In this document: positions 3,920 to 46,138 of the stretch, one piece after another | Layout of the letters: each line of letters begins with the position of its first letter | Numbering within the stretch: the first letter of the stretch is position 1 | Virus record (IMG/VR): IMGVR_UViG_3300032240_001991 | Location: 186,001-250,000 of that record | Length of the DNA: 64,000 nucleotides | Direction: 5' to 3' (one strand) | Notes under the pieces: generated by a model | Database searches by the model: none | What the model was told of the DNA's origin: nothing | The model's input: only the letters and a program-made list of their open reading frames with translations | Translations under genes and position numbers: made by a program

Positions 3920-4014
3920 GCCCCTGTAGTTTAATGGTAGAACACCTGTTTTATACACAGGCTTTGGCGCCAGATTAGCGCACAGTGTCGGTTCGAGTCC
4001 GGCCGGGGGTACCA
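3920..4014 (+). tRNA. tRNA-Ile(UAU) with long variable arm
   Basis: Acceptor GCCCCTG/CGGGGGT + A-CCA; anticodon arm CCTGT-TTTATAC-ACAGG; ~25-nt variable region containing a GCGC/GCGC stem; T arm GTCGG-TTCGAGT-CCGGC. Confidence 0.8.
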
Positions 4015-13221: not shown

Positions 13222-13299
13222 GCTCCTATCGTCTAGACGGGCCCAGGACTTTCGATTCTCAGTCGGATAACACAGGTTCGAATCCTGTTAGGAGCACCA
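13222..13299 (+). tRNA. tRNA-Glu(CUC)
   Basis: GCTCCTA/TAGGAGC acceptor, loop TT-CTC-AG, CCA. Confidence 0.8.
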
Positions 13300-16523: not shown

Positions 16524-16563
16524 GCTGTTGACTTTATCATTGTAGTATGCTATAAAATAGCAT

Positions 16564-16665
16564 GTAGCCGTAAGCGAATGGCATAGCTCCAGCGCAGTCC
16601 GGGCTGTGTTTGGGAACGGGAGAATTTAATTCCCCTTGGAGGTTCAAATCCTCCCGGCTACACCA
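16564..16665 (+). ncRNA. Leu-like tRNA-shaped RNA lacking an anticodon loop
   Basis: Acceptor GTAGCCG/CGGCTAC + A-CCA, Leu-type D loop, long V arm and perfect T arm; anticodon arm replaced by AGCGCAGT-CCGG-GCTGTGTT. Confidence 0.7.
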
Positions 16666-16675
16666 GATTAAACTA

Positions 16676-17110
16676 ATGAAAGAAAAATTTATAAAACTTT
16701 ACATAGACTTTGCTAAACGAGTTTCTGAATTAAGTCAGGCTTGTAGGCTAAAGGTTGGAGCTATCATCGTTAAAGAAGATAGAGTAATATCTATTGGATA
16801 TAACGGTATGCCTGCTGGGTGGGAGAACGATTGCGAAATTAAACTTTACCAATCAAATGGGCAGATAAATTTAACTACAAAACCTGAAGTATTACATGCC
16901 GAAAGCAATGCTCTTGCTAAAGTAGCAAGATCCACAGAAAGTAGCGAAGGAGCTACACTGTTTTGCACTCATGCGCCCTGTATTGAGTGTGCAAAATTAA
17001 TTTATCAATCTGGAATTAGCCAAGTTTATTACGAATTAGATTACAGAAGCGCAGACGGAATTGACTTTTTACGCAAATCTAGAGTAAGAGTAATACAATT
17101 AACTGCGTAG
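16676..17110 (+). CDS. dCMP deaminase
   Basis: KVGAIIVKEDRVISIGYNGMP, LHAESNA, THAPCIECAK. True start is ATG 16676; the ORF-track start lies inside the tRNA-like RNA. Confidence 0.92.
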   Translation: MKEKFIKLYIDFAKRVSELSQACRLKVGAIIVKEDRVISIGYNGMPAGWENDCEIKLYQSNGQINLTTKPEVLHAESNALAKVARSTESSEGATLFCTHAPCIECAKLIYQSGISQVYYELDYRSADGIDFLRKSRVRVIQLTA

Positions 17111-23313: not shown

Positions 23314-23913
23314 ATGTATAATACTTTGGTGCCGATGGTTGTAGAAAAAACTGGTCAGGGCGAACGTGCTTTTGATATCTTTTCTAGGCTTTTAAATGAG
23401 CGAATTGTATTTCTAAATGGTCCAGTTGACGACTATAGTGCAAATCTTGTTGTAGCGCAGATTTTACATTTAGAAAGCGTAGATAGCGAAAAGGATATTA
23501 ATTTTTACATTAATAGTCCTGGAGGCGTAATTACTTCTGGTATGGCAATTTATGATGTTATGCAGTTTGTTAAGCCAGATGTAGCTACTTTTGTTATGGG
23601 TCAGGCATGTAGTATGGGTAGTTTTTTAGCTCAGGCAGGAACGCCAGGAAAACGATTTATGCTTCCCAATGCACGACACATGATTCATCAGCCAAGTGGC
23701 GGGGCGCAGGGTATGGCTTCTGATATTGAAATTTCATACAAGGAGATTATGTATCTAAAGAAGCGTCTAACTGAGCTCTACGTTAAGCACAATAGCGCCG
23801 GTAAAACATATGAAGAATTTGAGGAAGATATGGATCGTGATACATTTATGAGTGCTGAAGAGGCTCTAGGATACGGTCTAGTTGATCAAATTTTAGAAAA
23901 GCGCAGCCAGTAA
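23314..23913 (+). CDS. clpP: ATP-dependent Clp protease proteolytic subunit
   Basis: [25 protein letters not shown] (Ser nucleophile), MIHQP, DMDRD.FMSAEEA..YGLVD. Confidence 0.96.
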
Positions 23914-43864: not shown

Positions 43865-46138
43865 ATGTTAGAACCAGATAAAGAATTGTCAAGCATGTTT
43901 GAACATGCAATACATACAGCAATTGAATATAATCACGAATACATTACATTGGAACATTTTCTTTACGGAATGATTTCTAACGATTCGTTTAGCGAAATGC
44001 TTACACAGTACGGTGCAGACGTACCAGGATTAAAAAATAATTTAGAAAATTATATCGATACTAATTTAGCGTCAATTGCAACTTTGCAAAAAAACGAAAG
44101 GCCACAAAAAACAAATACTGTAGAAAGAATGCTTAACAGAGCATTTACACAGGTACTATTCAGTGGGCGTCAGCAAATCTCTCCTATAGATTGTTTGATT
44201 AGTTTTTTCTCAGAAAAGAACAGTCATGCAAACTTTTTTATGAGAAAGGCTAAGATTGAAAAAGAAACATTTTTGGAATTTGCTATGAATAATAGTTCTT
44301 CGTCTGAAGAAAAAGAACAGTCTACAGTAAACGAAAAACAGATCGAAAAGTTTTTAATTCAGTACTGTGCTAATCTAACAGAAAAAGCCAAAAACAAAAA
44401 AATTGACCCGGTAATTGGTCGAGAAAAAGAAATTGAGGATTTAATATTGATCCTTGCTCGTCGTAATAAGAGCAATGTTATGCTTATTGGCGACCCGGGT
44501 GTAGGCAAAACAGCTATTGCTGAAGGAGTTGCTCGTAAAATTGTTGAAGGCGACGTTCCTACTTTTATACAGAATCATAGTGTATATTCACTGGATATCA
44601 GTGCAATGTTGGCGGGTAGTAAGTACCGCGGTGATTTTGAAGAGCGTTTGAAAAATGTTCTTACCGCATTAGAAAAGAAAAAGAATTGCATTCTTTTTAT
44701 TGATGAAGCTCACATGATGAGCGGTGCTGGAGCGGTCAATGGCAATAGTAACGATATGAGTAATATGCTCAAACCTGCACTTGCTAAAGGTAGCATTAAA
44801 GTTATAGCTAGCACAACCTGGGAAGATTTCCGCAAGAACTTTGAAAAAGATCGTGCACTTATGCGGCGATTCCAGCGAGTTATGGTCAACGAACCAAATG
44901 AAGAAACTGCTATTAAGATCGTTAAGGGTGTAAAAAAGTATTACGAAAAGCATCACAAGGTAAAGATTACTAATCAAGCAGTGATTGACAGCGTAAAATA
45001 CAGTATTAAGTATATTTCAGATAAAAAATTACCTGATAAGGCATTGGATCTTATTGATTGTGCTAGTGCAAGATTTAAATTGCGTGACGAAGACGGGGGC
45101 GTTGTTGACCACGACGAAATTGTTTTTGAAGTTGCAAAGATTACAGGGTTGCCACTAGATCAAATTGCTGCCAAAGAAAGCAATAATCTTAAGGATCTTG
45201 AAAAAAACATGCGGGCAAAAGTGTATGGTCAAGATAAAGCCATCGAAGCATTGCTTGATAAGATCTTTATTGCACAGGCGGGGCTAAAATCAGTCAATCG
45301 TCCAATTGGTAATTTCTTGTTTGTTGGCCCAACTGGTGTTGGAAAAACTGAAGCGGCGAAACAACTTGCAGCCAACATGGGAGTAAAGTTGATTCGATTT
45401 GATATGAGTGAATATCAAGAACAACATTCAGTAGCTAAATTTATTGGTAGCCCCCCAGGATATGTTGGGTTTGATGATAATGCAGGACAGTTGATTACAC
45501 GTCTACAGGAAAATCCAAACGGAATCTTACTGTTTGATGAAGTTGAAAAGGCACACCCTAGTGTGTTAACTATTCTACTTCAGTTAATGGATAATGGATT
45601 TGTTACTGGTAGTAATGGAAAAACTGCAGACGGTCGTAATGCTATCATTATCATGACTAGTAACTTAGGTGCAGCAGATTCTGAAAAGAATTCAGTTGGA
45701 TTTGGTAGTTTAGAACGAGATAGTGATCCTAAGGATGCTGTTAACAAGTTCTTTGCACCAGAATTTCGTAATCGTTTAGACGGAACTATTAAGTTTGATC
45801 GACTAGATCATAGTACTATGGCATTAATTGTTAAGAAATTTATCGACGATCTTAACGGTTTGGTCAAAGATCGAAATGTACATGTTCGGTTAAGTACCGA
45901 AGCTGTTGAACATTTGATCAAAAAAGGATTTGATCGAAAGATGGGAGCTCGTCCGCTACAGCGTACAATTGATGAACACATAAAAAAGCCGTTAAGTAAG
46001 GAAATACTATTTGGTAATCTTATTAACGGAGGTATTGTTGAAATTACCATTGTAGATGACGCGCTTACCTTTAAATTTGTAGATGTATTGCCAATTAAAG
46101 AAATAAAAGAAAATGAGCATCAAAGTTCTAGCAACTAA
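43865..46138 (+). CDS. clpA: ClpA-type double AAA+ unfoldase
   Basis: HEYITLEH, DPVIGRE.E, GDPGVGKTAIAEG, GSKYRGDFEER, LPDKALDLID, GPTGVGKTE, IGSPPGYVGFD, VGFG ClpP-docking loop, MGARP. Confidence 0.95.
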   Translation: MLEPDKELSSMFEHAIHTAIEYNHEYITLEHFLYGMISNDSFSEMLTQYGADVPGLKNNLENYIDTNLASIATLQKNERPQKTNTVERMLNRAFTQVLFSGRQQISPIDCLISFFSEKNSHANFFMRKAKIEKETFLEFAMNNSSSSEEKEQSTVNEKQIEKFLIQYCANLTEKAKNKKIDPVIGREKEIEDLILILARRNKSNVMLIGDPGVGKTAIAEGVARKIVEGDVPTFIQNHSVYSLDISAMLAGSKYRGDFEERLKNVLTALEKKKNCILFIDEAHMMSGAGAVNGNSNDMSNMLKPALAKGSIKVIASTTWEDFRKNFEKDRALMRRFQRVMVNEPNEETAIKIVKGVKKYYEKHHKVKITNQAVIDSVKYSIKYISDKKLPDKALDLIDCASARFKLRDEDGGVVDHDEIVFEVAKITGLPLDQIAAKESNNLKDLEKNMRAKVYGQDKAIEALLDKIFIAQAGLKSVNRPIGNFLFVGPTGVGKTEAAKQLAANMGVKLIRFDMSEYQEQHSVAKFIGSPPGYVGFDDNAGQLITRLQENPNGILLFDEVEKAHPSVLTILLQLMDNGFVTGSNGKTADGRNAIIIMTSNLGAADSEKNSVGFGSLERDSDPKDAVNKFFAPEFRNRLDGTIKFDRLDHSTMALIVKKFIDDLNGLVKDRNVHVRLSTEAVEHLIKKGFDRKMGARPLQRTIDEHIKKPLSKEILFGNLINGGIVEITIVDDALTFKFVDVLPIKEIKENEHQSSSN

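Follow-up and report, generated by a model that had tools for sequence, protein, structure and literature searches.

A conserved family of tRNA-Leu look-alikes without an anticodon loop in the tRNA arrays of T4-type jumbo phages

mascRNA-type signals and plant-virus tRNA-like structures are non-decoding mimics recognised by RNase P, RNase Z, the CCA-adding enzyme or synthetases, and Bessho et al. are said to have described in 2007 how transfer-messenger RNA (tmRNA) mimics a tRNA with a long variable arm. In YrlA the free ends form a Ro-binding stem, and the gene adjoins the Ro/TROVE gene. Y RNAs of the YrlA type are also found in jumbo phages (PMC7824862), and phage T4 makes RNA C (species 1 RNA, gene rnaC), an RNA reported to be late and not promoter-proximal, whose function is still unknown (PMC9697503). 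Here we describe a tRNA-like RNA gene of 102 nt, referred to below as the element, in a 64,000-nt stretch of DNA (the window; positions 186,001 to 250,000 of the 326,658-bp IMG/VR virus record IMGVR_UViG_3300032240_001991). It is one of at least 49 distinct members of a family from viral and metagenome contigs of uncultured phages, and we found no paper describing this family. The best explanation overall, to which we assign a probability of roughly 0.4, is that these RNAs, a conserved phage family of type II tRNA-Leu look-alikes, act in trans as mimics of the tRNA acceptor end and elbow.

Architecture of the element and its likeness to known RNAs

The element is laid out as follows, in window coordinates.

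16564-16665, plus strand: whole tRNA-like RNA gene, 102 nt
16564-16570, plus strand: acceptor stem, 5' strand GTAGCCG, in 7 perfect pairs with 16655-16661
16571-16588, plus strand: U8 and A9, then the D arm (16573-16588), AGC / GAATGGCATA / GCT, including G18 G19, with a 3-bp D stem
16589-16613, plus strand: hairpin 1, in the place of the anticodon arm, from the sequence and the minimum-energy fold
16591-16610, plus strand: core of hairpin 1, AGCGCAGT-CCGG-GCTGTGTT, an 8-bp stem with 3 G:U pairs
16591-16598 and 16603-16610, plus strand: strands of the hairpin 1 stem, with the CCGG cap at 16599-16602 and two C:G base pairs besides the 8-bp stem
16614-16617, plus strand: junction GAAC, its G invariant and its A nearly invariant in the family
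16618-16635, plus strand: long variable arm GGG(A)GAAT-TTA-ATTCCCC, with the triloop TTA at 16626-16628
16636-16654, plus strand: UU (positions 47 and 48) and a perfect T arm (16638-16654), GGAGG-TTCAAAT-CCTCC
16655-16665, plus strand: acceptor stem, 3' strand CGGCTAC (16655-16661), A73 (16662) and encoded CCA (16663-16665)

Read from the sequence, hairpin 1 of the window copy contains no 7-nt loop. In the minimum-energy fold (-39.7 kcal/mol, z = -2.9), the acceptor stem, the T arm and the two hairpins all form.

ARAGORN called 20 tRNAs in the window, none of them at 16564-16665, and a scan of the whole window with Rfam did not list the element. When the region was scanned alone, the Rfam tRNA model (RF00005) gave 31.0 bits against a gathering score of 29; the element has the cloverleaf of that model (acceptor, D and T arms and elbow nucleotides) and lacks its anticodon arm (5-bp stem, 7-nt loop, U33 and anticodon). 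No intron family matched at the element in either Rfam scan. A covariance model (R1) was then available from 24 relatives in other contigs, with the window copy excluded, and it matched exactly at 16564-16665 with 73 bits (E about 1e-17). The runners-up in the 326,658-bp genome were its two tRNA-Leu genes (42.1 and 37.3 bits), and by the same search the element is single-copy in its own genome. Judged by these scores and by the family comparison below, the element is neither a chance match nor a pseudogene, and it is very probably a functional, non-decoding tRNA mimic.

ARAGORN also miscalled family members at L010:340-440, L124:2037-2135, L133:5291-5388 and L134:9901-9999 (our locus labels, with positions) as tRNA-Pro(GGG) or tRNA-His(AUG). 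Since such genes are missed or miscalled by this program, their mis-annotation in viral catalogues is likely.

Several lines of comparison point to tRNA-Leu. The D loop of the phage's own tRNA-Leu genes, GAACGGTATA, equals that of the element, GAATGGCATA, in length and is identical to it at 8 of 10 positions, and the T arm of the phage tRNA-Leu(UAG) is nearly identical to the element's. In 7 contigs the nine best R1 matches outside the family were all tRNA-Leu (44.1-35.2 bits), with tRNA-Ser at 33.1 bits or less and tRNA-Tyr at 28.8; in phage T4, too, the top match was tRNA-Leu. The element shares with bacterial and phage type II tRNA-Leu the A73-CCA end, an acceptor stem of 7 bp, a D stem of 3 bp whose loop is of the GAAYGGYATA type, a variable-arm hairpin and UU at positions 47 and 48, which would suit an A15-U48 pair. 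Unlike tRNA-Leu, it lacks an anticodon loop and with it any leucine anticodon (NAG or NAA), a promoter of its own is placed for a start at nucleotide 1, and its variable arm has about 9 bp and a fixed triloop, compared with 3 bp in the phage's tRNA-Leu genes. By these likenesses the element descends from, or is closest to, tRNA-Leu, and is of type II. The first-pass annotation, which was made from the sequence alone, had described the same anatomy (acceptor stem, A73-CCA, Leu-type D loop, variable arm, T arm and a CCGG-capped stem of about 8 bp) and had called the RNA tRNA-like, Leu-like and non-decoding; the D loop, the tRNA-Leu matches of R1 and the variation of hairpin 1 described below agree with it.

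The nucleotides expected to build the tertiary core of tRNA-Leu (U8-A14, G18-U55, G19-C56 and A15-U48, the pairing itself being predicted) are present in the element and invariant. In Aquifex aeolicus, A73, U8-A14, G18-U55 and G19-C56 are critical for leucyl-tRNA synthetase (LeuRS), and similar determinants are cited for the Escherichia coli enzyme; removing the entire anticodon stem-loop costs only a 2.5-fold loss of affinity, and a variable arm of tRNA-Ser size gives considerably lower kcat and affinity with the Aquifex enzyme (PMC2377443). Leucylation of the RNA in vivo is plausible on these grounds, at somewhat less than even odds.

Among RNAs of T4-type phages, the closest known analogue is T4 RNA C, likewise a stable RNA from the tRNA region. 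Its 3' tRNA-like domain (L159:2907-3001, minus strand, within rnaC at 70908-71046 of NC_000866) was analysed as the fold of the 3' 95 nt, which has an acceptor stem of 7 bp, the T arm CCGGG-TTCGAAT-CCCGG, a D region containing GG and, at the variable-arm position, a hairpin of 10 bp, with the anticodon arm absent. RNA C differs from the element in a 5' extension of about 45 nt, a U at the discriminator position and the lack of an encoded CCA, and at 19.1 bits with R1 it is an analogue whose homology to the family is not shown. The family may nevertheless give a handle on RNA C, which has been unexplained for about fifty years.

The tRNA-like domain of tmRNA is also a mimic of the acceptor and T arm without an anticodon, with a long helix leaving the core; its G3:U70 pair for alanyl-tRNA synthetase, its pseudoknots and its tag reading frame are all missing from the element, and neither ARAGORN nor Rfam gave a tmRNA match there. 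YrlA and other Y RNAs resemble the element as non-coding mimics of the tRNA elbow that are handled by tRNA enzymes, whereas the free ends of the element form the acceptor stem; the 326-kb record contains no TROVE/Ro protein (PF05731), and no Rfam Y RNA matched. mascRNA-type signals and plant-virus structures terminate long eukaryotic or viral RNAs at the 3' end, whereas the element is a free-standing gene of a DNA phage that starts a bacterial-type transcript.

Conservation, covariation and distribution of the family

The first homologues were found with nhmmer around IMG/VR relatives of the neighbouring dCMP deaminase gene, and further ones by pattern scans. All 48 metagenome pattern matches proved to be members, each with at least 81.6 bits under R1, and a wide gap in score separates the family (at least 70.7 bits) from tRNA-Leu (at most 44 bits). 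A near-identical pattern, two 3' bases shorter, gave three matches in 185,579 species genomes, all of them chance matches without a T loop and none fitting R1, so that no member was found in that collection. An exact 28-nt pattern of the T arm and acceptor stem had zero matches in IMG/VR. Whole-record searches of Caulobacter phage Cr30, Erwinia phage Huxley and T4 gave no family member, and blastn and tblastn found no close relatives among cultured phages. One copy is present in two of four near-complete relatives of 331-355 kb and none in the other two. The element is thus an accessory gene of T4-type jumbo myoviruses: it sits within their tRNA arrays, one copy to a genome, and not all of these phages have it.

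In Erwinia phage Huxley, gp18 (L160:356-452, 97 nt), annotated as tRNA-Ile(aat), is an irregular tRNA-like gene with a long arm from a jumbo phage. It was considered as a family member and rejected, with 24.7 bits under R1.

Covariation was scored for 23 pairs in an alignment of 49 distinct members (A7), which was fitted to the model, a bias favouring the structure. Standard pairs fill 97.0% of the pair cells, compared with 23.5-44.4% when the partners are slid, and none of 500 shuffles matched the observed covariation values. Compensatory (double) changes occur in 15 of the 23 pairs, including 6 of the 7 acceptor pairs and all 6 scored pairs of the variable arm; the acceptor stem is paired in 99.7% of cells across the family. 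A plain MAFFT alignment, made earlier, shows the same compensatory changes in the acceptor stem.

Invariant or nearly invariant in the family are G7, U8, A10, G11, G18 G19, C24, U25, C26 and C66, the G-A junction after hairpin 1, the UU before the T stem and the T-arm motif G-K-AGG / TTC-R-A-NN / CCT-M-C; all 49 members agree at U8, G18 G19, TTC-R-A and A58, and A10 does not vary either. Two adenosines of the D loop are invariant, one at the A14/A15 position (raw nucleotide 15 of the window copy) and one at the A21 position. By their positions, these conserved nucleotides are the builders of the tRNA elbow and core. A73 is found in all 48 full-length distinct members, and CCA is encoded in 37 of 48 (77%), compared with 252 of 261 ordinary tRNAs in the same DNA (97%). 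The variable arm, at about 9 levels of pairs, is unusually long. Pairing is complete (100%) at its three apical pairs, each of which covaries; 41 members close the arm with the triloop UUA and 8 with AUA, and an A-rich 3x3 internal loop is found within it in most members.

Hairpin 1 is the free part of the molecule. It ranges from 8 to 28 nt with free sequence and no conserved 7-nt loop, and its caps include GAAA, UUCG, UCCG, GGGA, CCGG and UUUAU; in two members it is shortened to the stubs CC-GAAA-GG (L131) and CC-UUCG-GG. Because hairpin 1 varies over this range with tetraloop-type caps, the RNA as read from its sequence is unable to decode. A hidden anticodon in the variable arm or in hairpin 1 was considered and ruled out, the variable-arm loop having 3 nt and hairpin 1 as few as 8 nt. 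The UUUAU and UCUAU loops on 5-bp stems, when forced to 7 nt, give a pyrimidine at position 37 and a C32-G38 pair, and were likewise rejected as anticodon loops.

What selection maintains is the acceptor end, discriminator, elbow and long variable arm, with none acting on the anticodon end. The 49 natural variants in this way indicate which parts matter (acceptor end, A73, elbow and variable arm) and that the anticodon arm is not among them. A comparison of homologues had been proposed in advance, with a degenerate pseudogene or a spliced intron as the outcomes that would speak against a functional RNA: acceptor and T arms are kept and the hairpin at the anticodon position varies, the covariation across 49 distinct members excludes the former, and a hairpin 1 as short as 8 nt excludes the latter. 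A tRNA-Leu pseudogene in decay, or a tRNA that regains its anticodon through splicing, would explain why ARAGORN and the default Rfam scan missed the element, and can be dismissed with near certainty in view of 49 distinct members that show compensatory changes and keep their tertiary nucleotides invariant, a conserved promoter of their own, an 8-nt hairpin that leaves no room for an intron or anticodon, and no intron family match.

The usual explanations of phage tRNAs, codon supply or replacement of nuclease-cut tRNAs, are impossible for a family without an anticodon. With structural selection and a private promoter, it offers a well-defined case in DNA phages of a tRNA used beyond decoding.

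Promoter and possible functions

Two promoter hexamers precede the element.

16528-16533, plus strand: -35 hexamer TTGACT; a homologous TTGnnn lies at the same distance in 42 of 48 relatives
16551-16556, plus strand: -10 hexamer TATAAA, after a 17-nt spacer and 7 nt before G16564

Promoters were counted in the 48 distinct members with enough upstream sequence. Forty-two have TTGnnn, a spacer of 16-18 nt and then TAnnn(T/A), whose end lies 4-8 nt (mode 6) ahead of nucleotide 1, and the six that fail this pattern are mostly near-matches. All members begin with G or A, and 39 of the 48 have T at nucleotide -1, the usual pyrimidine-purine start. Such a promoter precedes only 5 of the 202 ordinary tRNAs of the same DNA; four more apparent cases were family members miscalled by ARAGORN as tRNA-Pro(GGG) or tRNA-His(AUG). 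The promoter of the window alone is not above chance, promoter-like sites being equally common in shuffled sequence, and its TATAAA was missed by the promoter scan, which requires T at the sixth -10 position. The promoter therefore counts as evidence because its position is conserved, and not because of the window site itself. The sigma70-like promoter proposed for this site in the first-pass annotation is in this sense borne out comparatively, by its fixed distance in relatives. Transcription is likely to start at nucleotide 1. The sequencing runs that contain this stretch are DNA runs only.

Across the family, a hairpin of no fixed length with a stable cap takes the place of the anticodon arm, and the parts that build the L-shape and the acceptor end are kept: U8 with a D-loop A at the U8-A14 position, G18 G19 with U55 C56, U54-A58, the UU at 47 and 48, the acceptor stem, A73 and in most members CCA. 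In the reading that we prefer, the host sigma70 RNA polymerase would start exactly at nucleotide 1 from the dedicated promoter, so that the RNA would be made from the first moments of infection. Because this start coincides with the mature 5' end, the RNA would bear a triphosphate at its 5' end and not depend on RNase P. Host tRNA enzymes would handle it (3' trimming, CCA repair and probably LeuRS), and its use would be that of a decoy or harmless sink, occupying host factors by which tRNA 3' ends or tRNAs with long variable arms are bound or attacked; decoding would be left undisturbed by a decoy that has no anticodon.

Candidate targets would be nucleotidyltransferase toxins of the MenT/AbiEii type. 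The family DUF1814 includes abortive-infection toxins. MenT3 belongs to DUF1814 (PMC7450476); it adds CMP to the CCA end and picks tRNA by the long variable arm (PMC11162799). An early trans-acting decoy fits best because of the parts under selection, the processing-free promoter of host type and the accessory status of the gene; taken by itself, the decoy or sink role is tentative, and we would not bet on it at even odds.

Several observations weigh against action in trans as an acceptor-end and elbow mimic. No result obtained here ties a toxin, a defence system or a binding protein to the RNA. The lower rate of encoded CCA may mean that the 3' end is less constrained than a decoy or acceptor role predicts, and the variable arm's conserved internal loop and its triloop are left without an explanation. 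By analogy with the Aquifex enzyme, a variable arm longer still than that of tRNA-Ser argues somewhat against charging by LeuRS. Finally, an open reading frame (ORF) closely follows the CCA in about 11 loci, which also fits a role in cis.

A cis-acting leader or processing role is the main rival, and on balance unlikely. The element would be the 5' module of an early mRNA, with its promoter there for the gene downstream, either as a tRNA-shaped leader that shields the 5' end or, in the manner of mascRNA, as a signal at which tRNA 3'-end enzymes cut after A73 or CCA to leave a near-leaderless mRNA. In its favour, the start proposed at nucleotide 1 would place the 5' end inside a helix. In the window the next gene begins 10 nt after the CCA:

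16676-17110, plus strand: dCMP deaminase gene

No terminator was found between the CCA and this gene, and the two are probably co-transcribed. About 11 distinct loci have a same-strand ORF whose start lies 6-22 nt past the CCA, and a Shine-Dalgarno sequence is often lacking. The downstream genes are mutually unrelated, however: dCMP deaminase in the window, and methyltransferases, 2OG-Fe(II) oxygenases and a glycosyltransferase elsewhere. At other loci the next feature is an array of ordinary tRNAs (L016, L067, L126 and L142) or a fresh promoter (L131, L133 and L100), and a hairpin that only stabilised an mRNA would have no need of invariant G18 G19, T loop and A73.

A more specific form of the trans-acting mimic is doubtful as a whole. 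It would be a non-decoding 5'-triphosphate tRNA-Leu mimic, made from the very start of infection with no part played by RNase P, dedicated to anti-defence or host takeover and directed against enzymes that read tRNA 3' ends and long variable arms, such as MenT/AbiEii-type nucleotidyltransferases, tRNA pyrophosphokinase toxins or LeuRS, with T4 RNA C as a remote member of the same functional class.

Use of the leucylated RNA as a non-ribosomal amino-acid donor had been suggested at the outset, by way of L/F-transferase (Aat) N-degron tagging for ClpAP; this route, or another aminoacyl-tRNA transferase, is improbable. In its favour, the RNA has the Leu-like identity set, the anticodon arm is disregarded by LeuRS, and the phage encodes ClpP (261 bits), a 763-aa ClpA-like Clp ATPase with two AAA domains and a 415-aa ClpX-like ATPase. 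The Clp genes lie at these positions:

23356-23901 (window): Clp gene
about 44465-45781 (window): Clp gene
133306-133887 (genome): Clp gene

The part of the suggestion that concerned Clp thus stands as far as ClpP and the ClpA-like ATPase are concerned, and fails in that nothing connects them to the RNA. Aat (PF03588) is absent from the 326-kb record, which may be incomplete, and an Aat encoded by the host could take its place; FemAB, a CCA-adding enzyme, a class Ia synthetase and a class II synthetase of the Ser/Thr/Pro/His type are absent from the record as well. E. coli L/F-transferase prefers G3:C70, C72, A4:U69 and C68 (PMC4105747). Of these five preferred nucleotides the window copy has only C72, with A3:U70, G4:C69 and G68 instead. 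The element is, moreover, missing from two of the four near-complete relatives, and an ordinary Leu-tRNA, which the phage also encodes, could already act as donor. The N-degron route through L/F-transferase is accordingly unsupported and dropped, and the broader idea of an RNA that can be charged but does not decode is kept as one possibility.

An action on the ribosome or on translation factors, in which the RNA would enter ribosomes with SmpB or EF-Tu or would sequester EF-Tu or LeuRS, is very improbable. The architecture is like that of the tRNA-like domain of tmRNA, and the T stem is highly conserved, which would suit such a role. At 3:70, 43 members have G-C and 6 have A-U, never the G3:U70 of tmRNA; the RNA has no coding part, hairpin 1 fills the place that would fall to SmpB, and the phage has a separate tmRNA gene.

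Genome context and other irregular tRNA genes

The virus record has 38% G+C, 31 tRNA genes and a permuted tmRNA gene, and encodes a T4-type major capsid protein, Gp23. The T4-type Gp23, ClpP, the Clp ATPases and the large genome together indicate a T4-like jumbo myovirus. CheckV rates the record as 36% complete, yet rates relatives of 331-355 kb as 93-100% complete, so that either the record is a fragment of a larger genome or the estimate is off. The dCMP deaminase has relatives in cultured phages only below 60% identity. No conserved partner protein was found beside the element in the loci compared, the neighbours being syntenic phage genes of unrelated function.

In seven loci (L114, L117, L121, L123, L127, L128 and L130) the CCA is followed by a conserved small hairpin or by a ATAAGTAG motif, which could be a late-promoter-like or processing site, and a ribosome-binding site AAGGA(A/G) with an ORF lies about 100-260 nt away.

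The tmRNA genes called by ARAGORN are of the permuted, two-piece type, at 121241-121629 of the genome (outside the window) and at L006:4426-4847, the latter directly 3' of a dCMP deaminase gene. Their tags are ANDDVYAMELAA and ANDSQFALAA, and the two-piece form may hint at the host group.

Two ordinary tRNA genes of the window are irregular in their own right. tRNA-Ile normally has a short variable arm. A 95-nt tRNA with anticodon UAU (Ile, reading AUA) at 3920-4014 (plus strand) has a long variable-arm hairpin, and the same form occurs at L019:562-655 (plus strand) and L082:5312-5406 (minus strand), with the loop CAGATTA or TAGATGA conserved in at least 3 contigs. A 78-nt tRNA-Glu(CUC) at 13222-13299 has its anticodon at position 37, later than usual, which suggests an irregular D region.

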